In this document: piece after piece, positions 2,103 to 56,198 of the stretch
Layout: every line of letters begins with the position of its first letter
Numbering within the stretch: position 1 is the first letter of the stretch
Source: Octopus bimaculoides
Lineage: Eukaryota
Reading direction: 5' to 3'
Length of the DNA stretch: 64,000 nucleotides
Assembly: GCF_001194135.2 (NCBI RefSeq)
Contig: NC_068981.1
Location: forward strand, 194,666,937 to 194,730,936
Made by a program: the position numbers and the translations under genes
Notes under the pieces: model-generated
What the model was told of the DNA's origin: nothing
The model's input: the letters and a program-made list of their open reading frames with translations, nothing else
The model's database searches: none

Positions 2103-4635
2103 ACTGACCCCACCTTTTCTGTGCCACCAGTTATCTCTCCCTTTCCACTGAGTTACATCTTTTGATTGCCATATCTCATTCTTAACAGACTTCATATCTG
2201 CCATCAACTGCATTCTTCCTTTGTTTATCCCTCACTATAGCCATCCCTATGTATCTCTAAACTCCATCTCTGTTGCTGTACCTCTTTCTATTTCTTCCCC
2301 CACCCACCCATCCTGTTCTCCTTTACCCACTCATCTCCATTCATTGTTCTATAATATTCTGCTGTTCCCTAACCCTAACCCTAACCCTACCCTTTGCAGA
2401 CTTCCTCTTACCATCCTCACTTCCTGAGCCACTCCTATTTCTTTTCCATTCTCCCAAGGATTGATATTTACCCTCCCCCCCCCCTCCCCACCTTTGTTCA
2501 CAACTTACTTCATTCACTTCTACCCACCTCTCACTCTCCTACAAACTTAACTGCCCACCCCTCTTGATTCTCAGACTGTATTCTCTCTCATACTTACCTT
2601 CTTGTACCTTTGAGAACATTCCCTGACACCTCATCACTCTCCTGATTGCCTTCTTTCCAGCTATTCCCATCGACCCTTATATGATGTGGGGTAGCCTTGT
2701 ATCTCTTGACTCCCGTGCTTGTCCCTGTATCATTCTTCAGCCTCTCAACACCTGGCAGAGAGTCACTTCCCTCCCTACTACAAACCCACTCACCTGAGGG
2801 GTGTTTGACGATCCTACCTGTACTAGTGCCATGTACAAAGCATTCAGAACACCCTGTAAACTGGCTGCTGCTAGGAAGGGCACCCAGCTGTACAAACTGT
2901 AGAACCATACCAAGGCAGACATTGGAGCTTGATGCAGTTGTGTGGCTTGTTGGATCCTGTTGAACCATCCAACCCTTTCCCGATATGGACAACATACATT
3001 AAAGAATGATGAAATATGACTCTCTCTGCCTTCACACATCCACCTCTCTCTCTCTCTCTCTCTATCAATGACTGGCACCTGTGCCAGTGGAGCATTAACA
3101 GCACTGTTCGAGCGTGATCATTGCCAGGGCAGCTGTCTGGCTTCCATGCTAGTGGCACGTAAATAGCACCATTTGAGCATGGTCGTTACCAGCGTCGCTT
3201 TATTGGCACTTGTGCTGGTGGCACATTAGAAAATCATTAGAGCGAGGTCGTTGCCAGTGCCGCTGGACTGGCTCCTGTGCAGGTGGCACATAAAAAACAT
3301 CATATATATATATATATGTGTCTGGATATATAAAGATATTCTTTTACTTGTTTCAGTTATTCGACTGTGGCCATGCTGGAGCACCACCTTTAGTCAAATA
3401 GATTGACCCCAGGGCTTATTCTTTGTAAGCCTAGTACTTATTCTATTGGTCTCTTTTTGCTGAACCACTAAGTTATGGGAACGTAAACACATCAACATCA
3501 GTTGTCAAGTGATGGTGGTAGGGACAAACATAGACACACAAATATATACATACATGTGCATAAATACAACAGGCTTCTTTCAGTTTCTATCTACCAAATT
3601 CACTCACAAGGCTTTTGGCCGGCCTGAGGCTAAAGCAGAAGACACTTGCCCAAGGTGCCATACAGCGAGACTGAACCTGGAACCATGTGGTTGGGAATCA
3701 AGCTACTTACCACACAGCCACAGCTGTGCCTGTAGATATATATCAATTCAAATATAGAGATAATTGTATATAGATTTATTTGAATGTAAATCTTGAATAA
3801 AAATGGCTGCTGCATTTGTTAGTCTGTCTCATATGCACAATGTCTACACACACGTTTTCACATACACATACATCTGAATATAAACAAATGTGAATATAAA
3901 GATATATTTGGATAAACTAATACACATAGACAAATCTGGTTATAGATATAACGATATTTATTAATATACCAGAAGATAAATATGGGTATAAATGGAGATT
4001 TAATGATATATATTGATACAACATATATGGTTATAAATATAGACATATACATATATAGACACATCCAGCTATAAATGTCGATCCATATTGTAATGTGATA
4101 AAATGGTTTACAGCTGAAGAAATGAGTGAGGAGAGTGACAAGTCTAATTATGATGATAATTTTAATTAGAAAGTGTAAAGTCAATGTCCTGTACTAATTA
4201 TATTTCTGTCATCACATAATTATTTCTGGTTGCAGACAGTGTGAGGAAGAGTCTTGCCTACTCCTCCTCCTCCTCCTCTAGACTGGACATATTTTTCCAC
4301 AGAAGACTGGAACAATCTCACTTGATGTCAAGACAAGAAGACACACAGACACACAAATGTGCGCACACACATATAAATATATGATGGGCTTCTTTCAATT
4401 TCCCGTTCACCAAATTCACTCATAAGGCTTCGGGAAACCTGGGGCTGTAGTAGAAGACATTTGCCTAGGGTGCTGTGCAGTAGGACTGAACTGAAAACCA
4501 CATGGTTGGGAAGCAAGCTTCTTAACCACACAGCCACACATGTACAAACACATCATGAATGTCTCAGCAAAGTTAAACCATTACTATGGATCTTTGAATG
4601 GTTAAAATGAGTTTCTCTCACTGGAATTGCTTTAG

Positions 4636-4749
4636 TTTCAATACAATCTGCTCTCATACCATGTGTTCTAACACCCAATGCTATGAGGGAGTTGTCCCCA
4701 AAATGCTATCAGGCAAGAAATCGGCAAACAAGCAAAACATATACATTGA
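4636..4749 (+). CDS. ROCO gene candidate upstream exon
   Basis: tttag|...TTGA|gtatgt, open in phase 2->2, joins 5205 in frame; no recognisable motif. Confidence 0.3.
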
Positions 4750-5550
4750 GTATGTGCGGTTGATAATTCTTATAAACTAGAGCTGCTTTTAATTTGTAAT
4801 TGAGGCACAAGAAGCCAGAGCTATTTTGAACGAGATCTCACTGGTAGCCATTACCATGTCCAAGACAAGAACAAGATCTTGCCTGCAACCATTTGCCATG
4901 CGCAAGACGACAACGAGGCTCTCATCAGCAACCAGTATTTAAGCAGGAGAATAAGACATTCTCTCTCGTTCCTTCTTGCACTTACACTGAGAAATACTGC
5001 ATAGTCAGCGACTCACAGTGGACTCTTGTCTTGCTCTGACTCCACATGCTTATCTCCAGAGTTAATGAATCTCATGTGTACAGAGTTAGGACAAACCATT
5101 TGTTGCTATAAAGACAGTCACTGAGAGCAAACAATATGAACGAGAACTCTGTAAATAAATGGCTATTGAATTGTACTCTGCTTGTGAACTTCTTTGTGTT
5201 CCAGATCCTTGAAGCTACAAAAAATAATTATAATGGGGAAAGGAGATACTCCCACAAGCATCTTAAACCTTCTATTCCATTATATATGCATCACTATGGC
5301 ATACAAGCATATGGTTCTTACACTGTTTATAAATAGTCATATAGTAAGGCGCTGGCATGGCTGTGTGGTAAGAAGGTTACTTCCCAAACACATGGGTCCG
5401 GGTTCAGTCCTACTGCCTGGCATCTTGGACAAGTGTCTTCTACTATAGCCTTTCGCTGACCAAAGCCTTGTGAGTGGATTTGGTAGCAGCACTGGCAACG
5501 ACCTCATATGTATATCATCATCATCATCATCATCATCGTTTAACGTCCGC

Positions 5551-5593
<43 letters not shown>

Positions 5594-7016
5594 TGATATG
5601 ATCATCATCATTTTAACATCCTGTTCTATTCCCTTTTTACTTCTTTTTCCTCTTCTTTTTTCTTATTCTACTTCTCCTTCTCTTCTACTGACTCTGTCCA
5701 AAAGCCTTTATTTAGTCCAATCGAATCTTTCCTTTCAGTTAGTAAATACACACATGCCCTGTATTTCTTTTACTTGTCTGGAGAATTTGCTACATATCGA
5801 GGAAACCCAAAAGCAACAGGCCATCCATTGGACTGTTCTAAATAAAAACAAAATGTATAATCATCATCATTCATCATTCATCATTCATCATTCAACATCT
5901 TTCCATTCTGACATGGGTTGGATGGCATGACAAAAGTTGCAAGGCCACTTTGCACACCGTTGCTAGCTTTGGCATGGTTTCTACAGTTGGAGACCCTTCC
6001 CAATGCCAACCGTTGTACAGAGTGAACTGGGTGCCTTTTTCCCATGCTACTGACAAGGAAGAGAAGAAAAGAAAAGGGAGAAAAGCTATTACTCCTAAGA
6101 GGGACTATTTAGGAGATGGAGATGGGTGGATTTATGCCAGGTGTCGAGAGGGTAAACCAGTGGTTCCCAACCTGTGGTCCCCTGATGCCTGGTGGTCTGC
6201 AAAGGTAGTACTCGGGGTCTGTGAACATGTTAAGTTTTCAATATTCTGGGGTCCGTGGGAAAACTCATTTAAATAAAAGGGGTCCTTGGTAGTAAAAGGT
6301 TGGGAACTGTATGATTGAGGGACAAGCACAGGTGTTTTGGTAGAGGAGACACATGGCTGAAGGAGATCAAAGGAAAATAGTGATGGAGTGCTAGAGCAAA
6401 CTTCCAAGGACCCCCAGTACTACCTTTGCGGATACAAATGGTGGGTCATGGGAGGGGATGAAAGAGTGGCTACTTTCATAAGTGTGTGAGAAGGGAGTAC
6501 CAGATGGACAATGATAGGGGCAAAAGTGATGATAGCAAGGAACAAGGGCAGAGGTGAGGGTGAAGGGAAACATCAGAATAGAGAGGGGTAAGATGGGAGA
6601 TATATGAGTGGCTTAGGAAGGGGACTAGATCAGAAAGTTATGGGTTGATGTGCAAGGTGTGGGAGAAGTAAAGAGGGAGGGATAGGGATATGTAAGGGAC
6701 TACAGTAATTGGGACAGGATGATAATGATGAATAGAAGTGGCTCAGGGGAGAGGAGAAGGGCGATGGCCAGAAGGGGGATGAGGTAATATGTGCCAGTTC
6801 TGCTCTCAGGTGACTACAGCAGCCAAATGGTACCACAAATGGGGGGGGGGGAATGATAGGTGTAAAGGGATGACTATTTGGGGAAATGTTTAATGCATCA
6901 GAGGCAAGAGAGGGGGCAGGTCCCTGCATGTGCAAGCATAACCAAGTGGTTTTAGGACATGATTTTTGCTGTAATGGGCGATCTTTCATAGCATCGTTAT
7001 CATTATTGCCACCGTT

Positions 7017-7049
<33 letters not shown>

Positions 7050-9518
7050 GTCGTCCTCGTCCTTGTCATCATTTGTCATCATCTAACATCTATTCTCAGT
7101 TCTGGCATGGAAGGATCCAATGTGTCTGAAGATCCATATAGATATTAGATGATACATTATATTATATATCACATATATATATGATATATATATATATGTG
7201 ATATATCATATCAAATTGTATTGTATTATATTTATTATGTTATACTCTGTTGTAGGACTGCAAGGATTTTCCTCTTGGGGACAACAAAGTCTAGCAAAAG
7301 ATCCTTGCTGAAAACTGTGTTAAAGGATCAGTTTCAGGAGTCTGGTGCCAAAGGTGATGAAGGTGTTACACTGTGGCTATGGCATCCTTTCAAGAATCAA
7401 CAAAACTGTAGGTCCTTTACAATGTTATTTTTGTTGTTGAATGTTGTTGTTGTTAAGCCCTAGTTCAGATCTGAATGAGCAGACCTATGATCAGAAACAA
7501 TCCAGCCATGACCATCTCATCATGTTATTCCAGACGTAGCATAACCAAGACTGTTTTATTGTTTTTTTTATATGTTTCAGCCCTCAAGGTTGTGGCCATG
7601 CTGGAGCACTGCCCGTAAAAATATTTTTTAATATGCTGGACTGCCGTGACCAAGATTCAAACCTGGGTTACCACGGCCTCAATGTGGGGTCCTCACCACT
7701 AAATGATCACAACCTTCATTTGGTTTTAATATGAGGGAAACTTGGCTGCTATTTCTGATGTATGCATGCATCTTTATATATGTGTGTGTGCGTGTGTGTG
7801 TGTGTGTGCGTGTGTGTGTGTGCGTGTGCGTGTGTATCATCATCATCATTTAATGTCCTTTTTCCATGCTGGTATGGGTTGGCTGATTTGACAAGAACAG
7901 ACAAGCCAGAGGGCTCTGCCAGGTTCTATGTCTGTTTTGGCAGGGTTTTTACAGCTGGATGCCCTTCTTGATGCCAACCACTTAACAAGAGTTTACTGGG
8001 TGCTTACTTGTGAGTGGATTTGGAAGATGGAAACTGAAAGCAGCCTATCTTATATATGTATGTATTTGTGTGTCTGTGTTTGTCTCCCCCACCATCGCTT
8101 CATAGTCGATGTTGGTGTGTTTATGTCTCCCGTAACTTAGCCATTCAGCAAAAAGAGACCGACAGAATAAGTACTAGGCTTACAAAGAATAAGTCCTGGG
8201 ATCGATTCGTTCGACTAAAGGCAGTGCTCCAGCAAGGCCACAGTCAAATGACTGAAACAAATAAAAGAGTAAAAGAATTTCTTTCAGAGCAGTGAGTTGG
8301 TGGAATCATGAGGGCATCATAAAAAATATCTTGGAACATTTGCTCCAGGTCTGAAAGTTATGAGATCAATTCTGACTGAAGTCAAGAACCAGGGGGGATA
8401 TAAATCATATCACCAACTGCATCCCCACCCAACTATAAATTCCAGGCCCTGTACCTATGTTAGAAACAGTTATTGGTTAATACTTTACATGGTTTTGTAA
8501 CATTAGAGAGCAATATCTTTTCAGGTGATTTAGTGGCAGAATATATGACAGAAGATTTAAAAGACTCACAAATAGAAATCTGGGAACTTTCAGACAATCA
8601 GGTTGGTAGCTTTCGTTTCTTTTACACAAATATTTATGGAGTAAAGATTGTTTGCCAACATAACATGGCAGTCCTGGTTTAGGACGAATGTAATTTAGCC
8701 CCAGGAGACATCGTCTCCAGCTGGCTATAGGACACGATCTGTGTCCTTACATTTTTTGAACAAGGGAATCTAGCACCCCCACTCAGCTCAAAACAATATC
8801 TGTGTATTACGATTTCAGGGTTATTTGCCTTCATCAGCACAGAATAATTGTTTGGCTAGAAGTGGCACTGCCAAATTCCTGTTTGAAATATATAGTTTTC
8901 AACGGGAATTTGGCAGTGCCAAACATTTATTCTAGCCAAACATTTATTCTGTGCTGATGAAGAGAAATAACCCGGAAGTCGTGATACACAGATACTGTTT
9001 TGAGCTGAGTGGGGGTGCTATATTCCCTTGTTCGAAAATATAAGGACACAGATTGTGTTGTATAGCCAGCTGGAGATGATGTCTCCTGGGGTTAAGCTAC
9101 AGCAACATTCGTCCTAAACCAGGAGTGCCATGTTATGATGGCAAATAATCTTTACTACAAAGTACTGTTGCTGAATATCTCTCGTTGTGAGATTTAAAAA
9201 TAGTAATTTTCTAACGAATATTTATAGTCACTGACTTCTCTCCCCCACCTACTCTCTCTCTCTCTGTCTCTATTTCTCTACTTATCACTCTTTCTCCCTC
9301 TTCCCTCCCCCTCTCTTTATGCACCTCATCATTTATGCATACACACACATCTTCTCTGACTTTAGATCTCTGTTTCCCTCTCACTTCGCCTCTGTTTTTC
9401 TCAATACACATCTCTTGCTGAATCCATCCATCCATCAATACATCATTCAATACGCACACACATACAATCATATATAAATATATGTAGATGTGTGTTCTCT
9501 CTCTCTCTCTCTCTCTCT

Positions 9519-9567
<49 letters not shown>

Positions 9568-10291
9568 CATACATATATATATTATAGTGGGGTAGGCTAG
9601 TTTATGGGGTTACTGTGGGTTTCTCACTCATAAGGGATTTAGCTTTACGGCATATCATCAAACCCCAAACGCTGCTAGCCTGAGACTTCTTTAAAATCTC
9701 AGAGGTCCCAGGCCAGCAATGTTTGGGGGTCTGAAGATATATCATAAGGCTAAACCTCTTATGAGCGAGAAACTCAGGGCAACCCCATAAATCACTATAG
9801 TATTAACTGCTCCACATCTTAGAGTCTGCTTCTTCTCCATATTTATGTATTTCTACAAACGATCCTTTATATCTATATATATGATAATAATATTAGGGAA
9901 AAAATTCCAAATTTACAGGGAAAAATTCAATTTAATTTATCAAAATTAAATTAAATTTCATAATATATAAATATATAATTTAGAGAAAAAAACCACAATT
10001 ATTTAATTCATCCATGAAAATCCACAATCATACATATATTTTACTANNNNNNNNNNNNNNNNNNNNNNNNNNNNNNNNNNNNNNNNNNNNNNNNNNNNNN
10101 NNNNNNNNNNNNNNNNNNNNNNNNNNNNNNNNNNNNNNNNNNNNNNNNNNNNNNNNNNNNNNNNNNNNNNNNNNNNNNNNNNNNNNNNNNNNNNNNNNNN
10201 NNNNNNNNNNNNNNNNNNNNNNNNNNNNNNNNNNNNNNNNNNNNNNNNNNNNNNNNNNNNNNNNNNNNNNNNNNNNNNNNNNNNNNNNNNN

Positions 10292-10344
<53 letters not shown>

Positions 10345-11674
10345 TATAATATATCTAAAGTTCTTTAATCACTGGTGTATTATTCTTTGCTGACCACCCC
10401 AACAGGTATTTCAGAAGATCCACCCCATCTATTACACATCAACTGCCCTCTATGTAATCACCTGTCATTCACCAAAGCCCAACTGTAAATCTGTGGTCGA
10501 CTTTATCAATACAGTCCAATGTAAGGTAGGTAATGCTTTCATTGTACCTTAATTACACTTTATTTAGTTTCATTCTGCTCTCATTATATCTTAATTATTC
10601 TTTAACCCTTTAGCATTCAGATTAACCCTTTTGATACCAACCCGGCTGAAACTGGCTCTGGCTCTGTAGTAGAAATGTCCTGTTTCCATAAGTTTTGAAT
10701 TAAAATCTTCCACCAAACCTTAGTCACAATCTATGTTCCTAACACTAGCTTAATGATAACTAAGTCATTTTACTAAATTCTTTGTTATATTTAAAGTAAA
10801 TGAAAGAAACACAGAGCATCTCAAAATAAATAAAGTAACGAAAGGGTTAAAAGTCTTCGTTAACTTTCCACATTTCAATGTCATGTAGTTAGAGTTTTTG
10901 CTCTCTGTATTTAAACCTATTGTTACCAACCCGGTCATTGCCAGAACCACCTGACTGGCACTTGTGCCGGTGGCACATAAAAGCACCCACTACACTCTTG
11001 GAGTGGTTGGCATTAGGAAGGGCATCCAGCTGTAGAAACTTTGCCAGATCAGATTGAAGCCTTGTGCAGCTTACTGGCTTTCCAGACTTCAGTCAAACCA
11101 TCCAACCCATGCCAGCATGGAAAACGGACGTTAAACGATGATGATGATAATTTCATGAAATAATTTGTTTTCAAAAAAATTTTGTTAATTTCAGAATCCC
11201 GGCAGCAGTATATTAATTGTAATGATTGTAAGTGATATAAATGGGGAGGTGAAAGGGACTCGAACCTGCGTCCCTGACCAATACTTCCAATTCCTCATGA
11301 ACAGCATAATAGACAATGAGAAAAACCAACTGGACAGTCTGCAAGAGGAGATGGAACAAATTAGGTGAGACCTCTTCTACTTAGACACTGATCATTGGTC
11401 AGTTTAAGTAAGATAGCCACTGGTGGCCATCATTGGTCAGTTTTGGGTAAAATTTAGTGACTGGTCATTGTTGGTCCATTAATTAAAATAAATTATCTGT
11501 GTTGGTGTTCATAAAAAGCCCCCACAACATTCTAGAAAGTGGTTGGTGTTAAGAAAGGGCTTCCAACAGTAGAAAGCATGCCAAAACAGACAATTGGAGC
11601 CTGGTGCCGCTCTCTGGTTTGCCAACTTCTGTTGAACTGTACAATCCATGCCAGCATGGAAAATGGATGTTAAT

Positions 11675-11708
<34 letters not shown>

Positions 11709-14700
11709 AATGATATGGATGTTGGAATAAATCAAAATCCCAGATAGTCAAAGCAGGAAGTTCAATTGGTTATGACTAATTTCATAAACTGATCAATCAC
11801 ATATATTAAAGACAGAACGCCTGGCATTCTATTTATTTCCTTCTCTGATCAAGTTCAGGATTGAAATCTTGAATATAATCAGAGAAGGAAACAAGTGGAA
11901 TACCAGACTTTCATATTAAGGGCCAGTTACCTATCTATGTTTGTTACCTACAATCATAGAAGGGACAGTTATCTACTCATGTTTATTAAAGGGTCACTTA
12001 CCTACCTATGATTGCTAAAGGATCAGTTTCCTATCTGTGCTTGTGAAAGAGTCAGTTACTTACCTGTGATTACAAACATATGAGATAACAGTCCCTGCAT
12101 TATTAACCCTTTTGTTACCAACCCAGCCGAAACCACCTCTGGCTCTGTAGTACAAATATCTTGTCTTCATAAATTTTGAATTAAAATCTTCCACCAAACC
12201 TTAGTCACAATTTATGTTCCTAACACTAGTTTCATGATAACTAAGTTATTTTACTAAATTCTTTGTTATATTTAAAATTAATTCAAAGAAACAGAGCATA
12301 TCAACAGAAATATAGTAACAAAAGGGTTAAGGTGTTCCAAAGGACCAGTTAGTAAGCTACATTTGTTTACTCTTTCATATTTTATGAAATCCCTTTTAAC
12401 TTTACCAATTTCATGTTCCTTAGGTCCCTTGATGCAAACGAAGAAGCCACAGAGAAGATTAAGTTGTTAACCCAACTGCTACACACTCGGCCCAAGTTGC
12501 CGAAACAAGTCCATGTACTCAATTTTTCAACAAACCAGGTTTGTATAACTTTACTGTTTAGGCAAGGGTGTGGGTGTTTAACAAGTCTGCTTCTCTCATC
12601 CATAGTTTTGTGCTCAGCTCTGATGTAAAGTCAGATTAAGTAATGCCTTGTGAGTGATATTTGCACAGCACTCAAAAGTACCTTGGATCGTAGGGCGACA
12701 TGCTGTGCTTGAGGAGACCTATTGAGTCAAGTACATCAAAACCAAAATCAAATGGAAATTGTTGTTGTGATTCCCGTGCCAGTGGCATGTAAAAAGCACC
12801 ATCCAAACGTGGCTGATGCCGGCGCTGCCTTGATTGGCTTCTGTGCTGGTGGCAAGTAAAAAGCAGCCACTACATTCTCGGAGTGGTTGGTGTTAGGGAG
12901 GGCATCCAGCTGTAGAAACATTGCCAGATCAGATTGGAGCCTGGTGTGGCTTCCTGGCTCACCAGGCCCATTCCAAGCCGTCCAACCCATGCCAGCATGG
13001 AAAGCGGACATTAAATGATGACGATGATGATGATAATGCATACATGTTTACAAGTATGTATGCATGCGTGTATGTATGTATGTAATTATGTAAACATGCA
13101 TGTGTGTATGTATGTAGGTAGGTATGTCTGCATCTATGTATGTGTCCGTGTATATGTGTTTGAGTGTGTGTGTGTGCATGTATAGACGACGAGATGCATA
13201 GGGAGAGTGAAAAGAGGGAGGGAAGAGGGACAAAGAGTGATAGGTAGAGAAATAGAGAGAGAGAGAGTAGGATGGGGGAGAGGGAAATAGGTGGCTGATA
13301 ACGATGACGATGATGATAATGATAATCCTTTCTACTAGAGGCACAAGGCCTGAAATTTGTGGGGAGGGGCATGAGTCAATTACATTGACCCCAGTGTTCA
13401 ACTGGTACTTAATTTATCGACCCTAAAAAGATAAACGGGAAAGTCGACCTTAGTGGAATTTGAACTCAGAACGTAGCAATGGGCGAAATACTGCTAACCA
13501 TTTCGTCCAGCTTGCTAACGATTCTGCCAGTTCATCCCCTTAATGATGATAATGACGACGATGATGATGATTATGCTGATGATGATAAAGTTGATAGGGA
13601 CGATGATGATGATGGTGATGAAAATAATACACTTCTTCCTCTTTTGAAGGATTAAACTTATATTTTACATTTACCATAATAACATTCCAACCAATGATTC
13701 CTTCTCTTTCCTCTTCTCCCCCACCCTCCTCCGCATCTGTGCAGGGTTCTGACATCATACAGTCAGCTCTACTCCGTAACTGTATTGACCAAATGTGTGA
13801 TGCCAAGTGGGAGCATCAAGAGGAGCTGGACATTATAAGAGACAAGATTTTTGAGTTGAAGGAATCAGGAACCGTTTTAGCAACATGGTCCTCTCTTCAA
13901 GAGTATTTCTTCACGAAGACACAAACTACACACCAAAAACTCTTTGAAAAACTGATGTCATTCCTCCACAAAATGGTAAGTCGTTTAGGTTTGGTTATTT
14001 TGTTGTGGAATAACTGTGAGATTATAGTTGTTGTAGTTGTTCTGATTAACAGCTGTGGAAAAAAGGTGAGAAAATGGGAAGGCTGGCTGGAGAACAGGCA
14101 GGGCCCGTGGAGTTATTTGCAAAGCTGCCTATTTCAGTCAGTCTGGGATGAGCATTGGTAACCTACATGACCTGTCTTGACTCATGAACTGAAGATTCCC
14201 AGTCAGCTGTGAGTCATTGCAGCTTTTCCCTTCATGGACTCCAACGAGACATTGAAAGAGAGAACTTCTTGCCATGTTCAGCATGCTTCATGTGCACTTG
14301 AGGACCACCTCAAAGCATTGGTCCCGTCTAGGGACTGTATGCACATATCTGGATTGAAAGGGTTGGCCTTGTCTGTTCTGATTCAGGTTACCGGAGCACT
14401 GGATAGAATGCTTCATGGTAATTGTGTGACTCTCTGTGCTCTGAGTTCAAATCCTGCCTAAGTCAAATTATTTTTCATTGTTGCAAGGTTGACAAAAAAA
14501 TGACTGATCTAGGGTGGTAGATTGAGGGATTGTGAAAAGGTTGCATGGCACGTAAAAAGCACCATTCAAGCATGGTTGATGCCAGTACCGCCTGACTGGC
14601 CCTTGTGCCAGTGGCATGTAAAAAGCACCCACTACACTCTTGGAGTGGTTGGCGTTAGGAAGGGCATCCAGCTGTAGAAACTTTGCCAGATCAGATTGTT

Positions 14701-17700
14701 ACTCTTCTTCCAACTTAGTCAAGGGTTCAAATCTTGCATGTACATTCTGTTTTTTGTCAAGGCACTACTTTTTTACTCTTTTACTTGTTTCAGTCATTTG
14801 GCTGCGGCCATGCTGGAGCACTGCCTTTAGTCGAGCAAATCGACCCCAGGACTTATTCTTTGTAAGCCTAGTACTTATTCTATCAGTCTCTTTTGTTGAA
14901 CCGCTAAGTTACGGGGACATAAACACACCAGTATCGGTTGTCAAGTGATAGTGGGGGGGGGGGACAAACATAAACACACAAACATATACACACACATACA
15001 TACATATATACATATATACGACAGACTTCTTTCAGTTTCCGTCTACCAAATCCACTCACAAGGCTTTGGTCAGCCTGAAGCTATGGTTGAAGACACTTGC
15101 CTAAGGTGCCACGCAGTGGGACTGAACCCGGAACCATGTGGTTGGTAAGCAAGCTACTTACCACATAGCCACTCCATGGTCAAATTGATCTAACAGGTTA
15201 TGCTTAAACAGCTCTTAGTTAACAACTGCAAGGAAAACGTATATTCTCCTTGATGTTATTCATCTTCAGTGACGAGGCATGGCACAGTGGTTAGGGCATT
15301 CAGTCTATGGTCATAAGGTCATGAGTTCGATTCCCAGCAGTGCATTATGTCCTTGAGCAAGACACTTTATTTCACATTGCTCCAGTCCACTCAGCTGGCA
15401 AAAACGAGTATTACCTGTAATTCAAAGGGGCCAGCCTTGTTACATTCCATGTCATGCTGAATCTTCCTAAGAACTACATTAAGGGTATGCCTGACTGTGG
15501 AGCGCTCAGCCACTTGCTCGTTAATTTCACAAGCCGGCTGTTCTGTTGATTGGATCAACTGGAACACTCGTCGTCATAACCGACGAAGAGCCAGTTGATC
15601 TTTAAGTCCAGATGTTGAACAATTGTAATTTCTTAATTCTTTCTTCAGGGAGGTAGTCTTGACCTACAGAAATGTGGATGGAACCAAATCGACCTTGATA
15701 ATCATTTCATCTGTGTGAATCCCATTGTATTCACAAAACTTCTATGTCGATTCCACATTGCAGAAGAAACCCAAGAATTTCGGTTAACATCCACTCACTT
15801 CTGGCCAGACAAACAAAATAAACCAAGTGTGGAGAGTTTGGTTCATGTCTTAGAAACAGTCCAAGTCCGTGGAATTATTCCTGAAACGTTGTTCCCAGTT
15901 TTGTGGCAAGAGTTCCCGACGTTAGATGAAAGTCAGGTGAAGCTTCTACTTCAAGTGTTTATCAGCCTGGGTATGTTGCTTCCGCTTCATTCCAGTGTAC
16001 ATGGTTCATCTTTAACAACATTATCGCTACCCACATATCCAACACTTTCACCCAAGAAATATTATTATGCATCGGTCATTGATTGCTTCAATGACCTTCG
16101 ACCTCAGCTCAACTGGACTCCAAAACCATACCCAGGAGATTTACAGGTAAGAAGACTACACACACATCATCATCATCATCATCATTTAACATTCTTGTTC
16201 TCCGCTGGCAAGGGTTGGATGATTTGACAGGATCCGACAAACCAGAGAACACCACTGAGTTCCAATGTCTTCTTTAAAATGGTTTCTACAGCCAGGTGCA
16301 ATTTGATGCAGTTCTGTGGCTTGTTGGATCTTGTTAAACAATCCAACCCATACCAACATGGAACAAGGATGTTAAATGATGATGATGATGATATATAAGA
16401 AAATATATATAGATGTAAAAGAAAAAATATAAAGCAAAACCTAACTACTTTTAACATTCTCTTCTTTCTAAACCAAATCATGTTAAATTAATAAAACCTA
16501 GTCATTCCCAACATTTTTGATTATCTCCCTTATACTGGAAAAAATCCCTGATTACCTTCCCCTGCCGGGAACTCCATATTTCACAACATAGCGAAGACAT
16601 GACATGGTATAGGTAAAGAAATTTGAGAAACTCGTAAAGAAAATTACGAAACTGGTTATTTCTCCAAAAACAATGTTACTATATGCAAAATTTTCCAGTA
16701 TTTTTCTAACATAACAATTTAAATATATTCTTTAACCATATAGCACAAGCCTTCTGTAATTTTTTCACTCTATTTTGTCTTTTAAACATCCAACCACGTG
16801 CTTTCACATACCAACTCTCTCACCTATTCAAATTAAAATACACACACACACACACACATAAATATAGTAAAGTTTCCATAAAACTTCTATTCCTGTATTG
16901 GTCTACCATGTTGACTTCCCAAACTCTGTACAAAAGGTGTGGTTAACTGACCTTGCTCCTCCAAATAGATTTTATTCCTGTGTCTGTTGTATGACATATT
17001 GTCTCCTCTCCTCAGTCTGTTTATGGTACGGAGTTACATCTCCCTCAGGTCTTTATCCTGTGTTCTCATTTATTAAAAATTAATGATTTAGTCTAGAGGA
17101 AGGGGTTGTGATAAAGAGAGATGAATGGGGTTGATTTTCATCTTAAACAAACTGCAAAGAAAACAAGGACTGGAGGGGTACTTCACTTCGGTAAGAAAGG
17201 GCTGAGTGTAGGGAGTAGGGGAACATAATATGAAAGATGGGAGGAGAGATGAGTGAGGTGGGTGGGATTGGGTGGAGAAGGTACACAATCAACAAACTAC
17301 AAAGAACAGAGGCCATTGTAGTAGCAGTAGAAAGACAAAGTGAGGAATCAGTGTAACTGTGGGTTTCAGAAGTGGACTCCATGGCAATCATTCTTTTTTT
17401 GTTTTATTTGTTTCAGTCATTTGACTGCGGCCATGCTGGAGCACCGCATTCAGTCGAACAAATCGACCCTAGGACACTTATTCTTTGTAAGCCTAGTACT
17501 TATTCTATCAGTCTCTCTTTGTCGAACCGCTAAGTTACAGGGACGTAAACACACCAGCATCGGTTGTCAAGCGATGTTGGGGGCACAAACACAGACATAC
17601 AAACGCACATATATATATATATATATATGCATATATACGATGGGCTTCTTTCAGCCTCCATCTACCAAATCCACTCACAAGGCTTTCGTTGGCCCGAGGC

Positions 17701-20700
17701 TATAGTAGAAGACCCTAACCTTAACTTGCCCAAGGTACCATGCAGTGAGACTGAACCCATAACCATGTGATTGGTATGCAAATTACTAACCACACAGCCA
17801 CTCCTGTTTTATTTCTGTATCCGTTTAGCTTTCTAGCCACTTTCTCATGTTTCTATCTCTATTGACCAATGTCCTTCCAGTGGCCTTGTTCTTATATCTT
17901 ACTGACCAGAAATTTACTATTGACCTTCAATGGATCCAATTTCCTTTCCAGATCAGCTGCTGGTTCCGTTTCATCTTGGGTGATCCCCCAGAGGGTCTGA
18001 TGCAGCGACTGCTGTGTTGCTGTCACCAAGCCATACACAAACAGGCAACTTACCAACACTTATGGAAACATGGAGTGTTGATACGTGCTGGGGAAGTGAT
18101 GCTTTGCATAGAATACACATCAGGAAACATCAAACGCTTCCATATAACTGGTCGCATCAATACAGACTTCCAAGGAAGCGAAGCAACGGCTATACAGATG
18201 ACGTGGCTTAAAATGGCTCCCCTCATTCTGGCGGCCATTTCCATGCTCAGTTCTTTCCATGGTTTAATGTATAGTACCTACCTGGTGCCATTAGGTAAAT
18301 ATTTCTATGAACCCATTGAGACGGCCACTGATTCCACTCACCAACATGTCTTCTCAACTGGAAGCTGTCTAAAAGCATGGACTCACAAAAAGCCTTTGAT
18401 TATTGAAAGAGAAAGAATTCTAAAAGTCGATCATCTTTTTCCATTTGAAGGTAAGTTTTGGTTCATTCCAATCCTGTCCAAATGTTCTTTAACCCCAGGC
18501 TAACCTGGATCCAGCAGATCTATGATCAAAGACATTCCATTTCATTCTTGGACTGTCATGTTTTTTTATTTTTTAATCTTTTACTTGTTTTAGTCATTAG
18601 ACTGTGACCATGTTGGGGCACCATCTTGAAGAATTTCCATTTGAATGATTGAACTGCATTTTTTTTTAAAACCTGGTACTTATTCTGTCAGTTTTCTTTG
18701 CTGAACCACTAAGTCATTGGGATGTAAACACATCAAAATTTCCACTTCTTTCTTTTTTTTTTATTTTTATTTTTCTAAAATTTTCGTTGCGTTTTGCAAC
18801 TTTTTCAATAGAAGACCAATGGAAGAAGCAGCACTGTTAGATCTCAGAATGTCAGATATTGTGGAAGAGATAAGATCATACTGTATGGTAATAGATCTCT
18901 CCCACCCAAACTAGTCTGGGAAAAGGAAGTGAAGTTGACACTGGAGTTGACTTAATTGACTAACCATTTGAGACTAAATTTGTGATCTTGTATCTATGTC
19001 AGAAACAAATATAATTCTGGATTCCAGCAGGGGCATTCATGCATCTACTCTACAACAAAACACCTATATCTGTCCCCTCAATACCTTAAATCTCTCAACT
19101 TGCACAAAACCACAATCCCACAACACTACCCTCCACTCCCAGTTGAAGGGCTTTTGTCTTGCAAGATACTTGGTGACCCTGTCAGTGCTGGGGCCGCATA
19201 AAAAGCACCCTGTACACTCTGTGAAGTGGTCAGCGTTAGGAAGGGCATCTGATCATAGAAACCAGCCCAAAACAGACAGTGGAGCCAGGGACAGCTCTTG
19301 GCCTTGTCATCCACTGCCAAACCATCTAACCCATACCAACATGGAAATCGGATGTTTAATGATGATGATGATGATGATGATGACTTCAATCCTGTTCAGG
19401 ACAACTTTGCCTTTCCTCACAATGGATTTGATGAAGTATCAGTCAAGTACCAGAGCCCTTGGCATTAACATTTTCCCCCCAAACTGCAGGCTTTGTGGTG
19501 GTGCTGGTGGGGCAATGTAATTAACAATCACCTTCTCACTAATAATTACTGGTCTTACACCAGAATTTAAAGCAATTATCATAATAGTTAATGCAATAAT
19601 AAGAACATGGAAGACAAGATTAAAAAAGAGTTAAAAGTTGTAAATTGTTGTATTAATATAATTCCTCCTCTCCCTCCTCCTCCTCATCATCATCGTCATC
19701 ATCACCACCACCACCACCACCACCACTACCACCACCATCATTATTTAACATCCATCTTTCAAGCTGGCATGGATTGGACGGTTTGGAAGGACTCAATGAG
19801 CCAGAGGATTGTACTGGGTGCCAATGTCTGCTTTGGCATGGTTTCTATGGCTGGATGCCCTTCCTAATGCCAACCACTTTACAGAGTGTACTGGGTGCTT
19901 GTTATGGGGCACCAGCCCTTGTGATGTCATCGAATAACTCACAAAACAAAGAAAAAAGACCTTCAACTGGGTAGGGTTACAGTTTTGAGGAAGGTGGCTT
20001 TATGTCAGGAGTTGAGAGGATAAAGTATGATGGAGGGATAGACACATGAAGTCTTCTATACAGAAGATAGATGGCTACCCTGTATTATATAAGGGTGGGT
20101 GGGAACAACTTGAAAGAAGCCAATGATAGTGGTGACGAGGTGTCAAAATGTAATTCAACTCCAAAATACATATTAGTGTATTGTTAGTGGAAATATAGAA
20201 ATATTTACCGATTTCTTGTGATTCTCAGATTGATGTAGTTCCAATTCAATATTGAACTTTGCTTTCTTTTTCTTTGTTGTTTCTAGTACAAAAATCTGTT
20301 GGTTCCATCTCTGTTATGATGGAATTCATCCTCTCCAAGAAGGAAGAAATCTGCTCCCAGAGTGAAGAAAGTCCATTGATTGTTGATAACTACTCAGCAG
20401 CAAGATGTTCCACTCAGATGGCAGTTCCAAAGACCAAAAAGAAAGCGATGCTCCAAATAAAATGGAAATTAGATGAAGAAAATAAAATTGTCCAAAAAAC
20501 GAACAACAACATGGCAGGTGAAGGTTTGTCTGTAAAAGACAATGGTAAGAATTCCTGTATAGGGTCTGATACTTCAAAGGGAACACTTCAGAACCTGAAT
20601 GAGACTGAAACTGGGGTTTCGAATGAAAATGAAATTGATGGAAGAATAATGAATGGTCGAGTGATGAGTGAGGAGAATGAGAAGTCTATAACTGTGAGGA

Positions 20701-20954
20701 TTGCTTCTAGTTTTGTGGCGAGCATAATGGTAATGGCTCTAGCACAGCACCTTGTGGAAGAATCTTCAGTGTCTGTGGGAAATATTGCTAAAATCACAGC
20801 TACAACTGCAACTGCAGTTCAGGCTGGTGACATTGATGCAGCCGTGAATGCAGTGTTTGATGTTGTGAATAAAGTTAACGACATGCTTGAGGTAAAACCT
20901 TCTAGCCCCAAAAATGAGGCCCCCCGCAAAAGTAAGTTTTGTATCTTAATGTAA
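4636..20954 (+). CDS. ROCO-family (Roc-COR, MFHAS1-like) protein gene, spliced; 5' end not resolved
   Basis: Phase-consistent GT-AG chain: 7256-7353, 8525-8601, 10406-10525, 11195-11364, 12424-12538, 13745-13975, 15649-16146, 17952-18450, 20287-20954 (824 codons plus stop). Weaker upstream exons at 4636-4749, 5205-5313, 5739-5854. Roc-like RIFLLGTTKSSKRSLL / IEIWELSDNQVFQKIHPIYYTSTALYVI; COR-like FLHKMG..FICVNP and PPEGLMQRLL..LWKHGVLI. Confidence 0.8.
5205..5313 (+). CDS. ROCO gene candidate exon (SLKLQKIIIMGKGDTPTSILNLL...)
   Basis: Good acceptor ttccag, weak donor ATG|gttctt; phase 2->0 fits the next exon. Confidence 0.4.
5739..5854 (+). CDS. ROCO gene candidate exon (LVNTHMPC...NKNK)
   Basis: tttcag| ... 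AT|gtataa, phase 0->2 matches the 7256 exon. Confidence 0.5.
7256..7353 (+). CDS. ROCO exon, degenerate P-loop (TARIFLLGTTKSSKRSLLKTVL)
   Basis: tgtag| ... AAAG|gtgatg, phase 2->1. Confidence 0.75.
8525..8601 (+). CDS. ROCO exon, G3-like region (IEIWELSDNQ)
   Basis: ttcag| ... CAG|gttggt, phase 1->0. Confidence 0.8.
8799..8843 (-). ncRNA. Hammerhead-like motif (family 2, left arm)
   Basis: tctgtg CTGATGA agg-loop-cct GAAA tcgtaat a cacaga; 6-bp stem I. Confidence 0.6.
8948..8992 (+). ncRNA. Degenerate hammerhead-like motif (family 2, right arm)
   Basis: tctgtg CTGATGA agagaaataacccg GAAG tcgtgat a cacaga; stem II and GAAA mutated. Confidence 0.45.
9583..9800. repeat. Imperfect ~220 bp inverted repeat (old MITE-like)
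   Basis: tttatggggtt..gtttctcactcataag..tttagc..ccccaaac versus gtttgggg..gctaaa..cttatgagcgagaaac..aaccccataaa. Confidence 0.55.
10406..10525 (+). CDS. ROCO exon (VFQKIHPIYYTSTALYVITC...)
   Basis: aacag| ... AAG|gtaggt, phase 0->0; resembles the Roc segment H-x-x-F/Y-x-T-x-x-A-L-Y. Confidence 0.85.
10626..10846. mobile_element. piggyBac-type MITE (~220 bp)
   Basis: TTAA on both sides; CCCTTT...AAAGGG termini. Confidence 0.8.
11195..11364 (+). CDS. ROCO exon (NPGSSILIVMIVSD...EEMEQI)
   Basis: ttcag| ... AG|gtgaga, phase 0->2. Confidence 0.85.
11917..12075. repeat. Degenerate ~30 bp minisatellite
   Basis: Repeated aagggNcagttacctatctatg-like units. Confidence 0.5.
12107..12326. mobile_element. 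piggyBac-type MITE, second copy
   Basis: TTAA flanks; near-identical to 10626-10846. Confidence 0.8.
12424..12538 (+). CDS. ROCO exon (SLDANEEATEKIKLLTQLLHTRPKLPKQVHVLNFSTNQ)
   Basis: cttag| ... CAG|gtttgt, phase 2->0; similar in layout to the MFHAS1 Roc insertion. Confidence 0.85.
13745..13975 (+). CDS. ROCO exon (Roc end / COR start)
   Basis: tgcag| ... ATG|gtaagt, 231 nt, phase 0->0. Confidence 0.85.
14770..15175 (-). mobile_element. tRNA-derived SINE, near full length (same family at 3345-3730, 17395-17800, 49117-49477, 55991-56418 and partial copies)
   Basis: A-box TGGCTATGTGG, B-box GGTTCAGTCCC, internal (TA/CA)n, tail CAGTCAAATGACTGAAACAAGTAAAAGAG. Confidence 0.8.
15276..15600 (+). 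mobile_element. tRNA-derived SINE, second family
   Basis: GGCATGGCACAGTGGTTAG..GAGTTCGATTCCC head, then CCTTGAGCAAGACACTT; 3' part also at 37880-38060 (-). Confidence 0.65.
15649..16146 (+). CDS. ROCO exon (COR)
   Basis: ttcag| ... CAG|gtaaga, 498 nt open frame. Confidence 0.9.
17952..18450 (+). CDS. ROCO exon (COR C-terminal part)
   Basis: tccag| ... GAAG|gtaagt, 499 nt, phase 0->1. Confidence 0.9.
20287..20954 (+). CDS. ROCO terminal exon ending RKSKFCILM* (CaaX)
   Basis: tctag| phase 1 matches the 18450 donor; stop TAA at 20952-20954; AATAAA at 20970-20975. Confidence 0.8.
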
Positions 20955-24446: not shown

Positions 24447-27400
24447 CACACACACTCACACACACAACTAGCTTCTTTCAGTTTCCGTCTACTAAGCTCA
24501 CTAAAAGGGCTTTGGTTGGCCCAGGGTTATAGAAGAAGATACTTTGCCTAATGTACCACATGGTATGACTGAACTCAAGACCACAGGATTGGGAAGCAAG
24601 CTTCTTAACCACACAGCCACACCTGTGTGTGTGTGTGTGTGTGTGTCTTGACATAAATGTGCTAAATGTAAACAAAATATTTTAACAATTTTTCTTTTTA
24701 TACAATTCCTAATAATAATTCATTACAAAAGTTTAATAGGATTTTTTTTAAACACCAAATTATTATGAGGTGGGTGGAGGTGGCCATGTAATTAAATAGG
24801 GACCAAGGGTAAAGAATAATTGAGAACTGCTGATCTAACCCATGCAAGCATGGGAAAGTGGATGTTAAAACAATGATGACGATGATGAGAGCTAACAAAT
24901 CTCTAAGATTTTTGAGCATCTTCAATTCCTTTCTTATTTTGGCTCCAGTTCTTATCCAACATCCACCTCTAACATTAATTAGATCACCCAGGTAACAGAA
25001 ACAACCAACTCTTTGTAGTGAGTTATCTGAGTAGCTCAGGTACTCATCTCTTAGGCACCTCTACATCTAATCACTCCTGCATATCTATCTGTTCATGAGG
25101 TACTCTGTTAATGAAGTACCTTGTTCATGAGGCACTTTTTTCATGTGGTACCCTGTTCATAAGGTACTCTGTTCATGCTGTACCCACATCATGAGGCACT
25201 TTTTTTTCATGTGGTACCCTGTTCATGAGGCACTCTATTCACAAGGTACTCTGTTCATGAAGCACTTTTTCATGTGGTACCCTGTTCATGAGGCACTTTT
25301 TTTCATGTGGCACTCTGTTCATGAGGTACCCTGTCCACGAGGTACTCTAATCATGAGGTACTCTGTTCATGTGGTACCATGTTCATGATGTACCCTGTTT
25401 ATGAGGCACTTTTTTCATGTGGTACCCTGTTCACGAGGTACTCTGTTCATGAGATACCAGTTCACGAGGTACTCTGCTCATGTGGTACCCTGTTCATGTA
25501 GGAGATAAAAATGCTGAAGTAAATAAATAAAAGATTTGTAAAACAAACAAAATCAACAACAACAACAAAAGATATAAAAAAAACAATACGAAGCAATAAG
25601 CATGTTGTTACCTTTGGAGTAAAGGCTTGTCTTGTGTGTTGTTTGGTGCTTGACCGGGGATGGCTTGAGGGGTTAACGGGGTTTGGTCGTGATGCACTTT
25701 CTTCTTTCACCGGCCGTGCACTTGAGGACTCTTTGCTTGGCTGACTGTCACATTCCATTTTCTCTTCTTTCACCGACCCAGCTGGGTCCTTTACTGCTTT
25801 CTCCTGGTGTGGGTCGGCTGGTCTGCTCGGTGTGGCTGCTGTGTCCCCCTCGGACGTCAGAGAACTGTTTAATGTTGAAACAACAGGAACAATGTTGGGC
25901 GAATTGATCACACTGCCTGAATCTGAAGCAGTGTCAGTGCTTTCACTGCCGGGGCCAGACGAGCCCCCAAAACGGGTTTCAATTTTAAGAGGTTTCGTCA
26001 CATCCGTAGAGGACACAGTTTTCGGCAGAGTGACCTCCCCTTCCCTGTCATCAGTGACTGCGATGTGTATTTTGACGTTACTTTCTTTAACGGTGTGTAA
26101 CTGGTGTCGTTGTAGGTTCTCTGCAGAAAGTCTAGTAACATCAGCTTTGGTGGAATGTGGGGGTAAGGTCTGAGGAGGCTGGAGGGTAGCGGATGGAGGC
26201 TGGGGGTTAGGATCTGTTAAGTTATTTTCAGTCTCTTTATCCTCCATTGGTTTCACCTCCTCCAGGATGGGGCTCTTGGCATAATTATGACTGTCGAGAG
26301 CAGCAGGAAGCCTTGCAGTGATCGTGGTCACAAGAGGAGCAGTGCTGGTAGCTGAAGTGGAGGACACTGAAGTGGTGGCATTAGAAGTGTCTTCTGGGGT
26401 GGCTTTGGTCTCGTTTGGTTGTGTTTGGGAATTCAGTTTGGAAGCAGGGTTAGGGTTCTGTTGAGCTGCAGATTTGGAATCTGTGTTTGCGTTTCCTTTG
26501 TCGGAGCTCTGATGAACTGGAGACATGACTTTCACCATCTGTAAATAACGGCATTAACAAACAAGAGAGAATAACAGAGAAAATAGTGGCAAAGATATGA
26601 AGAGCAATTACAATATCAACAACACACACATTACATTCTCTTTCACAATGTTCATGTATTTACACAAACACATACACACATATACATACATACATGTATA
26701 TATATATATATACATCTGACTCACCTACTCTATATCCTACCCTTCTCCCTGTTTTAACTCTACAGCAAGACACCTACTCCTGTCCCTTTATACCTTTAAC
26801 CTTTCATCGACTGGCACAAAACTCCCCTCTTCTCCTCAATACTACTCCCCACCGCCTCTTGGTTGAGGGGATTTTATTTTGCAAGTTGGTGACCCTGTTG
26901 CTGCTGGTGCCACGTAAAAAGCACCCAGTACACACCGTAAAGTGGTTGTTAGCATTAGGAAGGGCAACCAGTTGTAGAAACCACGCCAAAACAGACAATT
27001 GGTGCCTGGTGCAGCTCCCGGCCTTACCAACTCCTGTCAAACTGTCCAACCCAGACTGGAAAACAGATGTTAAATGATGATGATGATGATATCAGGATAA
27101 ATATCAAAGAAAGGAGTTGGAAAATCATTTTAATACTTCATTTACAACCATTCCATCGTTATCCAATACAATCAATCTTGTGTAATGCTGTAATCATTCC
27201 TGCAGCTTTTGATTAATTTTAATATGCCACATAGACTTTCTCTTATAACACATGTTCAACATAATTCCTTGGAATTCTGTAAAAAAATACTATGCCAGTT
27301 GGCTCTGAAATTTCCTAAAAATACACACTCCAAGTTGGGTGTGTCCACAAGGGAATATCTTACTATAATTGGCTTCATGTCTGTCCATCTGTCTGTCTGT

Positions 27401-54604: not shown

Positions 54605-56198
54605 GTTTTTCTTAAGAAAAGACAAACCGTGAAAAGTGGAGCGAGTTAGCCATTGTTTCATACACGGTGTCTATAGAAAATATCCCCATTGATATAGAAT
54701 ACCGGATTACATTTGTACTCTTCTGTATACCTCCGTAGTTTTTTTTTTTTACCAAATTTATGTAAATAATTAAGAAATTATATTTGTTTTATGAATGTAT
54801 GTATATCTGTGCATTAATAATGTACCTTTTCTTATAATATATATCTGTGCTTATAACATATAGTAAGTATAGTTTCTTAATTGTATGTAGTAATTAGCCA
54901 AGAAACAGTGAAAGTGCGATTGGCAATGAAATAATAATGTTAATAAGTTTTGTATTGTAGAAAGTTAAGAGAAAAAAAGTAAGATTTCAAAGTAGGAAAA
55001 TAACAGAAAAATCGCGACTAAATTATTGGCAGACGGCAAAGAATTTTTATGCAAGGGAAATAACTTGTTAAACTTATTGAAGAGTTATCTTCCTTAAATT
55101 CTGCCCCTTTACGCTAAAATGCCAGAGATAAATTTTATTTTTCATTGTCCATGGCGCCCATTATATTGACACTGTATAAATAGCATTTATACAGTAGATT
55201 AATTAACGAGGTATGGTGAGTTCAAATCCATAACAGTCATTTTGTCATTTCTCTGAAACAGACATTTAGTTGTACTGGAGAAATTACGAAATTATCCACA
55301 AATTGTTTGGCGTCTTATCCACGAAAAAGTTTTTCTGTCGTTCAGTTTGTTCAATCGGAACTACAGTTAAGTACTATCCTTGATGACCAGTGTGTGTTAT
55401 TGAACGATTATCGCTGGATAAATCAAACATCAACTTCAGGTGAAATATGCTGTAACACGAAAGATGTATCTTGTAAAACACAACCTTTATAATCACCTAC
55501 TGCCCAAGCTGTAGCAAATCTCTTTTGATTCCTTGCAGAATGAATATCTACCGACTTTACTAGGTCTTTGCTTCTCATCCGTGGTAGTTCTGTAATCTCG
55601 CTGGGAAAGCCTCTACTTTTGTGATCCGATTTATGTCCAACTCTACATTATACACATAAAGTGAATGTCCTTAAAACTATCTCTTCCACTCCATTAAGCC
55701 AAATATGAAAACAACACCTGCCATTTCAAACCAACACGGGGACCATCTCTGATAATGTCCCTCCAGTTACTCTCATAGTGTGCTCCCTATCTTTGCCGAA
55801 TTCATCAAACTATTCATAGGGAACAGGATGACTGCGTGTTTCTTTGCAAAATACAGTCACTATTCATACCAAGAACATAATATTGTATCAGTCCCCGCAT
55901 GATGAACACAGAACTAAATCTCTCAATGTTGATAGAAATTCTACTTTTCTGATGATGTAAAACTTGCCACCATTATATACTAAGAAGATACTCTTTTTTC
56001 ACTCTTTTACTTGTTTCAGTCATTTGACTGTGGCCATGCTGGAGCACCGCCTTTAGTCGAGCAAATCAACCCCAGGACTTATTCTTTGGAAGCCTAGTAC
56101 TTATTCTATCTATCTCTTTTGCCGAACCGCTAAGTTACGGGGGCGTAAACACACCAGCATCGGTTGTCAAGCGATGTTGGGGGACAAACACAGACACA

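Follow-up and report, generated by a model that had tools for sequence, protein, structure and literature searches.

The 64,000-nucleotide stretch of the Octopus bimaculoides genome analysed here, referred to below as the window (RefSeq assembly GCF_001194135.2, contig NC_068981.1, positions 194,666,937 to 194,730,936 of the forward strand), carries a gene for a predicted Roc-COR (ROCO) protein that ends in a CaaX box. On the plus strand, positions 7256-20954 read as nine open segments with compatible phases and AG/GT at every splice boundary. Their 842-residue translation is identical to residues 9-850 of XP_014771313.1 (LOC106869899), an 850-residue RefSeq protein labelled "uncharacterized", and O. 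sinensis LOC118766001 matches the translation at 93% identity; RefSeq has a model of the gene but no name for it. An earlier note, made from the letters of the window alone, had described an intact nine-exon frame. That frame was reproduced here, equals independent NCBI models in O. bimaculoides and O. sinensis, and has all of its exons intact in Argonauta.

Exon chain and Roc-COR fold

The nine exons stand as described, with a correction at the start. Base 7256 is the third base of the split codon Arg8, and the first eight residues of the RefSeq protein are absent from the window translation. In O. sinensis, the start exon (MAVTVSM plus two nucleotides) is located ~6 kb upstream. Within the window, neither the true start-exon sequence (at ≤3 mismatches) nor the O. 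sinensis DNA surrounding it found a match; the start exon therefore lies beyond the 5' end of the window, and the nine exons are coding exons 2-10 of the gene. The heptamer ATGAGGT, considered as an in-window start, occurs at chance frequency (11 found against 12 expected), and its copy at 6779 sits in a window-specific insertion. This insertion, ~2.4 kb of the first intron at 4601-6973, has no counterpart at the orthologous O. sinensis position (L001), where 14672-15717 aligns to window 3545-4601 and the sequence from 15713 onward aligns to the window from 6973 onward. It is probably a lineage-specific repeat insertion.

All nine exons lie on the plus strand. Coding exon 2 (7256-7407), the first in the window, encodes strand β1 of Roc, the P-loop and switch I, with a degenerate P-loop GTTKSSKRS at 7278-7304 and a degenerate switch I GDEGV at 7353-7367. 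Exon 8525-8601 carries a degenerate G3/switch II, WELSDNQ (8581-8601), at the position of the family consensus WDxxG[RQ]. Exon 10406-10525 encodes VFQKIHPIYYTSTALYVITCH..., which corresponds to the switch II helix and β4 of Roc and is in frame with the exon before an assembly gap. A degenerate G4, VMIVSD (11219-11236; family consensus [GS][TS][KH]xD), lies in exon 11195-11364, and exon 12424-12538 completes Roc, including the G5 region VHVLNFSTNQ. COR-A and the first part of COR-B are encoded by exons 13745-13975 and 15649-16146, and COR-B by exon 17952-18450, with a weak Pfam COR-B match at residues 467-529. The last exon (20287-20954) encodes post-COR helices, a basic motif, a disordered linker, a three-helix module, a basic linker, the CaaX box and the stop codon.

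The assembly gap, a run of N at 10047-10291, lies inside intron 2 (8602-10405), with TA microsatellites on both sides and no coding sequence. The junction across this intron, WELSDNQ/VFQKIHPIYY, matches O. sinensis at every residue and runs colinear, with no residues missing, with Owenia WDLSGRPVLQGAHQAY (WDLSGRPVLQG) and LRRK2 WDFAGREEFYSTHPHF (WDFAGREEFY). In the genomic alignment, O. sinensis DNA matched to window 6973-9882 continues directly at 10313-10850. No exon is therefore hidden in the gap.

Sequence and predicted structure support the identification as a Roc-COR protein, the former for Roc and the latter for COR. The Pfam Roc profile (PF08477) matches residues 3-126 above its gathering score (E = 2.3e-7; 31.5 bits against 27), as the earlier note had expected, and a profile of the family finds the Roc domain of LRRK2 as its best sequence match in the PDB (5.7e-9). 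Pfam COR-B stays below threshold (18.2 bits against a gathering score of 27), and Pfam COR-A has no match in any subfamily member tested. An AlphaFold2 model built from a 19-sequence alignment (predicted local distance difference test score, pLDDT, 71.8; predicted template modelling score, pTM, 0.71) is confident over residues 1-650, disordered over 650-750, and helical with low confidence over 751-823. When this model is compared with the PDB by Foldseek, the top matches are all RocCOR proteins over ~630-690 aligned columns: LRRK1 (8e05, E = 3.4e-14), LRRK2 (8fo9), Chlorobium tepidum Roco (3dpu, TM-score 0.60 on the target) and M. barkeri Roco2. It is this structural comparison that bears out the recognisable COR region claimed earlier. 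The RefSeq protein begins eight residues before strand β1 of Roc and has no N-terminal leucine-rich repeats (LRR).

G motifs, selection and the C-terminal tail

The G motifs were compared by alignment to the Roc domain of LRRK2 and to canonical subfamily members. In O. bimaculoides, G1 (GTTKSSKRS against GxxxxGK[ST]) retains the lysine, has serine in place of the second glycine and arginine in place of the Mg2+-binding Ser/Thr. G2 reads GDEG against PT[ED]G, with threonine replaced by aspartate; G3 reads WELSD against WDxxG, with D to E and G to D; and G4 reads IVSD against [TS][KH]xD (THxD/TKxD), with the aspartate alone retained. In the Argonauta genome, the corresponding motifs are GTTKASRKS, WELSDH and IVNN, so that the P-loop lysine position is arginine and G4 has NN instead of SD. 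G1 to G4 are degenerate in O. bimaculoides, in O. sinensis/vulgaris and in Argonauta, and the P-loop lysine and G4 aspartate are not conserved within octopods because both are lost in Argonauta. The motif readings of the earlier note, including CILM and its stop at 20940-20954, were confirmed at their positions; its statement that all GTPase motifs are degenerate applies to G1-G4 as altered motifs, with the qualification that these two residues survive in Octopus.

In LRRK2, the substitutions K1347A and T1348N are reported to lower GTP/GDP binding (PMC6320773). We infer from the alignment that the octopod Roc is unable to bind Mg-GTP. As judged from sequence and model, it keeps the G-domain fold without the Mg2+- and phosphate-binding residues and, in Argonauta, also without the guanine-recognition residues. 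Because these residues are lost while the fold is retained, the domain is predicted to be a class i pseudoGTPase and should be unable to switch. Class i pseudoGTPases are defined by the absence of both nucleotide binding and hydrolysis (PMC12490416).

The degenerate domain is maintained by selection. Rates of nonsynonymous to synonymous substitution (dN/dS) were estimated by the Nei-Gojobori method after the nine exons had been aligned, codon by codon, with their counterparts at the loci of O. sinensis and Argonauta. Overall dN/dS is 0.208 against O. sinensis and 0.175 against Argonauta (bootstrap 95% confidence interval 0.135-0.223). In the Argonauta comparison, the value is 0.195 for Roc (95% confidence interval 0.116-0.314), 0.144 for COR, 0.325 for the variable tail and 0.111 for the last 92 codons. 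Neither stops nor frameshifts occur in the nine exons of O. bimaculoides, O. sinensis and Argonauta, and splice sites are conserved among the three. Because the octopod orthologues share the degenerate motifs and overall dN/dS is 0.18-0.21, the gene is under purifying selection and is not decaying, which answers the concern about decay raised in the earlier note. Accelerated evolution of an inactive Roc was also considered and is only mild, the Roc/COR identity ratio being 0.63-0.86 for octopus as against ~0.8-1.0 for canonical pairs.

The C-terminal tail is more structured than the ~220-residue low-complexity stretch described earlier. That description fits residues ~691-752, which are variable and predicted to be disordered; the rest contains a KKK..KW motif and a ~70-residue helical module, and this motif together with the last 92 residues is the most constrained part of the protein. 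The basic motif PKTKKKAMLQIKWKLDEE (20427-20480) lies ~170 residues ahead of the CaaX box, in sequence that is otherwise disordered; it is retained in animals as distant as sea urchin and octopus, and its KKKxxEIKWKLD pattern could be a membrane, import or docking signal. The Ala-rich module (20682-20891), modelled alone, forms three helices with a pLDDT of 66 and a pTM of 0.39. Pfam searches with the module from five species gave only sub-threshold, mutually inconsistent matches, and a Foldseek search with the isolated module returned no structural neighbour (best E = 1.5). Its first helix, ITVRIASSFVASIMVMALA, has a mean Kyte-Doolittle hydropathy of 1.9 over 19 residues and a hydrophobic moment near 0. 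A transmembrane role for this helix is unlikely: the hydrophobic core spans ~14-16 residues between charged flanks, other species have an even shorter one, and the parts on either side would both have to be cytosolic. It is read here as a putative core or membrane-proximal helix.

Residues 824-844, before the CaaX box, are predicted to be disordered (pLDDT < 50). The protein ends in C-I-L-M followed by the stop codon (20940-20951 and 20952-20954), with the cysteine exactly four residues from the end and aliphatic residues at a1 and a2, which fits the sequence definition of a CaaX box. In the CaaX rules, methionine at position X directs farnesyltransferase. The polybasic character ascribed to this tail is weak, with a net charge of +4 over the last 20 residues.

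CaaX-tailed relatives and alternative readings

A profile search over 1.84 billion representative proteins placed the octopus protein in a wider family; a second, word-indexed protein search based on a four-sequence alignment brought no additions. Full-length relatives occur in gastropods (Haliotis, Batillaria, Babylonia, Patella, Elysia and Biomphalaria), and further full-length molluscan ones in the bivalves Ylistrum and Argopecten and in one chiton. Outside molluscs, full-length relatives were found in the nemertean Tubulanus, the annelid Owenia, the echinoderms Acanthaster, Lytechinus and Antedon, the hemichordates Saccoglossus and Glandiceps, and the cnidarian Nematostella. They are labelled "uncharacterized" or carry automatic names (MFHAS1-like, LRRK2-like, roco4). 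Members have in common Roc-COR, the KKKxxEIKWKLD motif, a variable linker, an Ala-rich module with the consensus R.AS.FVAAILA...AAxxTAxAA.A.Q.GD.DAAA.AV..AV, and a C-terminal S-[KR]-x-C-a-a-X. The four elements of the octopus protein align with those of Haliotis, Tubulanus, Patella, Acanthaster, Babylonia, Saccoglossus, Lytechinus and others. Lytechinus, Tubulanus and Owenia, all non-molluscan, have an N-terminal LRR region of the RNI/F-box type (Pfam LRR_6, LRR_At5g56370), and molluscan members lack LRRs and begin just before Roc.

All 14 aligned family tails, which come from six phyla, have the CaaX cysteine at position -4, and the serine that precedes it by three residues shows at least 90% conservation. 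When the module was used by itself as the query, 25 short fragments of the last exon came up, and all eight of those read end in CaaX. On this evidence the CaaX box reads as an ancestral hallmark of the ROCO subfamily and not as an octopus novelty. Position X is methionine in octopods, Tubulanus and Acanthaster, leucine in most others, and alanine or phenylalanine in two; because of this variation, the lipid class of the subfamily is probably not fixed.

Most members keep canonical G motifs, as in Acanthaster (GGTGSGKTS / WDLAGRK / GTHVDK) and Haliotis (GDVGCGKTS / WDMTGRQ / STKADK). Degenerate motifs were found in Patella caerulea (P0008: GDCEEKKSR / WNLKYKQ / AIEND), which retains the C-terminal module and the CaaX box (CRLL), and in a bivalve-like sequence, P0023 (GGTFSERQD / WNFSD / TNVSQ). 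A neighbour-joining tree nests Patella within the canonical gastropods at 93% support and joins P0023 to scallop at 92%; support for the attachment of the octopod branch is only 7-42%. These placements of Patella and P0023 imply that the motifs were lost at least three times while CaaX and module were kept. We judge as evenly balanced the broader proposal that these proteins form an undescribed ancient ROCO subfamily dating to the cnidarian-bilaterian ancestor, with its own CaaX membrane anchor beside a unique Ala-rich module, in which Roc lost its activity on three or more separate occasions (octopods, the limpet Patella, a bivalve-like lineage) while COR, module and CaaX stayed strongly constrained. 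In the openly searchable literature, we found no description of a lipidated ROCO protein, a ROCO pseudoGTPase or the LOC/XP loci concerned. Reviews of Roco proteins distinguish three domain groups and mention prenylation for Rabs only (PMC6337361, PMC6320773).

The Nematostella vectensis member, EDO29795.1 (P0025), has a TIR domain (Pfam TIR_2, 1.4e-6) between its COR-like region and its module and CaaX box, and Roc seems to be missing from the deposited model. The arrangement may point to innate-immunity-type signalling as a context of the subfamily; alternatively, the model may be an old mis-model.

We consider it fairly probable, from sequence and predicted structure, that the 850-residue octopus protein is a farnesylated, nucleotide-independent membrane scaffold and a class i pseudoGTPase. 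Because X is methionine, the cysteine of CILM would be farnesylated, after which -ILM would be cleaved and the cysteine methylated. The farnesyl group and the short basic RKSK, possibly with the Ala-rich helical module, would hold the protein at the cytosolic face of a membrane. Roc-COR, frozen in one conformation, would then serve as a constitutive scaffold or dimer for partners that canonical relatives such as those of Haliotis, Acanthaster and Lytechinus presumably engage in a GTP-dependent manner. Regulation may have shifted elsewhere; a candidate, as a lead only, is the conserved serine near the prenyl-cysteine, by analogy with K-Ras4B, RhoA and Rap1. The earlier note had proposed a nucleotide-independent, prenylated ROCO scaffold, and that proposal stood up to the checks of the exon chain against gene models, of the orthologues for decay and of the Roc and COR domains, with non-binding and prenylation as predictions.

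Several observations weigh against this interpretation. COR-B falls below its gathering score and COR-A is unmatched, so COR rests on predicted structure, and support for the exon chain comes from gene models and conservation. With so weak a basic patch, a farnesyl group alone may give only transient membrane binding. The P-loop lysine of GTTKSSKRS and the G4 aspartate of IVSD remain in Octopus, where weak or non-canonical nucleotide binding is possible. If Roc bound ATP, Mg2+-free GTP or some other ligand, it would act as an atypical switch or as a G domain that is permanently loaded and not empty. In favour of this, glutamate can partly mimic aspartate in G3, and the Roc domain is under purifying selection and, measured against COR, has diverged only mildly beyond what canonical members show. 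We nevertheless regard it as unlikely, since Argonauta has arginine for the P-loop lysine and NN for SD in G4, which leaves the two residues unconserved within octopods, and since the Mg-binding Ser/Thr is arginine or lysine in all octopods, with the G2 threonine and G3 glycine lost.

The weak basic patch, along with the hydropathy and almost absent hydrophobic moment of ITVRIASSFVASIMVMALA, would also suit a protein whose CxxX is kept for a reason other than prenylation and whose membrane attachment, if any, comes from palmitoylation or from monotopic or tail-anchor-like insertion of the module's hydrophobic helix. We think this improbable given the short, charge-flanked core of that helix, shorter in other species, and the form of the family tails: the cysteine invariably occupies the fourth position from the end, an aliphatic residue stands at a2 throughout the listed tails, and X is one of M, L, A and F, which marks a CaaX box and not a generic cysteine. 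Far less credible still is the view that a canonical ROCO gene is present here as a copy that is decaying or has lost its function, or that the gene is an artefact of prediction. That every G motif has been lost can be read as decay, and the original O. bimaculoides gene set held only an 89-residue mis-modelled fragment (P0022); against this stand the intact frames and conserved splice sites in three octopods and dN/dS values with confidence intervals far below 1. Moreover, no second copy of the gene lies within the window and no canonical octopod paralogue appeared in the family search. Canonical G motifs occurred solely in distant homologues that belong to other phyla or classes.

Among known systems, the human ROCO kinases LRRK2, a protein of Parkinson's disease, and LRRK1 come closest in the PDB, in sequence as judged for Roc and in structure across Roc, COR-A and COR-B, and they share the order and spacing of the G-motif positions. 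Unlike them, the octopus protein lacks kinase, ARM, ANK, LRR and WD40 domains, has destroyed G motifs, and possesses its own CaaX signal and an additional helical module at the C-terminus. Prenylated Rab GTPases bring LRRK2 to membranes (PMC6337361). Group 1 ROCO proteins, such as MFHAS1 and the Chlorobium tepidum Roco, share the minimal Roc-COR core without a kinase, and the Lytechinus, Tubulanus and Owenia members resemble them further in having LRR-Roc-COR. They differ in that the subfamily LRR, where present, is of the RNI/F-box type, that molluscan members have none, and that all members carry the C-terminal module and CaaX. MFHAS1 is not known to have either the module or a CaaX box. The name "MFHAS1-like" given by NCBI to the starfish member is automatic, and by its predicted architecture the octopus gene is set apart from the MFHAS1 type.

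K-Ras4B, RhoA and Rap1 resemble the octopus protein in combining a G-domain fold, a disordered basic linker and a CaaX box. The CaaX box of K-Ras4B is CVIM, with X = Met and hence the same farnesyltransferase class as CILM. As a lead only, the subfamily's conserved serine, three residues before the cysteine in a basic context, recalls the phospho-switch serines of K-Ras4B, RhoA and Rap1. In contrast to these small GTPases, ~630 residues (COR, linker and module) separate the octopus G domain from its CaaX box, the basic patch is far weaker and the G domain is predicted to be inactive. Class i pseudoGTPases such as the AAGAB N-terminal domain and CENP-M likewise keep the GTPase fold without the G-motif residues, in a domain maintained by selection, presumably as a protein-interaction module. 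The searchable literature describes none that carries a CaaX tail or forms part of a Roc-COR tandem, and the octopus protein differs from them further in that its subfamily also has canonical members, making paired comparison possible. The octopus protein thus resembles a ROCO core joined to a lipid tail of the Ras type: its sequence reads as ROCO by domain architecture but lacks the functional G motifs.

How the Roc cycle and membrane recruitment control ROCO proteins is a central open question for LRRK2 biology. Here, a ROCO branch appears to target membranes with its own lipid anchor, whereas LRRK2 needs prenylated Rab GTPases, and several of its lineages appear to dispense with nucleotide binding while under purifying selection. 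If so, the core membrane job of the Roc-COR scaffold would need no nucleotide switch, and natural pairs of canonical (Haliotis, Acanthaster, Lytechinus) and putatively dead (Octopus, Argonauta, Patella) members would allow the contribution of the Roc cycle to be probed for ROCO proteins, LRRK2 among them. The octopod Roc is a candidate addition to the short list of pseudoGTPases, and the subfamily offers a function-level hypothesis for "uncharacterized" genes in at least six animal phyla. These points have no direct medical or applied consequence.

Gene models, repeats and neighbouring genes

Several deposited models of the gene deviate from the nine-exon chain. The O. bimaculoides fragment of the original gene set (UniProt A0A0L8HN20, 89 residues) is mis-modelled: it covers 8540-8601, 10406-10525 and 11553-11744, that is, exons 3-4 followed by a repeat-derived open frame (HGKWMLIDDDDD...). 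In O. vulgaris, the 678-residue protein CAI9714706 is missing exactly the 166-codon in-frame exon 15649-16146 (exon 8 of 10; part of COR-A/COR-B), which reflects either an isoform that skips this exon or an artefact of lift-over. The deposited Argonauta hians protein Ahia01_000211400 (769 residues) has a wrong N-terminus and omits the equivalent of exon 10406-10525; both true exons are intact in the genome (L002:19831-19995 and L002:20468-20608). P0011 (Logan), considered as a spliced mRNA, proved to be genomic read-through.

The introns are filled by at least two abundant interspersed repeat families of ~200-420 bp that resemble short interspersed nuclear elements. Copies lie, for example, at 10933-11151, 12775-13035, 14546-14697 and 42781-43030 on the plus strand, and at 3337-3742, 14774-15175, 17402-17805 and 56001-56418. 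These repeats yield long spurious open frames (e.g. ...LWPCWSTAF...). On the minus strand, a 154-residue open frame at 39675-40136 resembles, by eye, the N-terminal part of a mariner/Tc1-type transposase and is a candidate only, with no Pfam match at E up to 0.01.

Downstream of the ROCO gene, a ubiquitin C-terminal hydrolase (UCH) gene of the BAP1/UCHL5 type occupies 22000-48305 on the minus strand, with a long open reading frame at 25465-26553 and an exon at 48042-48305 that matches Pfam Peptidase_C12 (2.2e-11). A UCH-type neighbour (Peptidase_C12 and UCH_C) also follows the ROCO gene on the minus strand in O. sinensis and Argonauta, and its conservation in three genomes therefore supports the orthology of the ROCO genes.

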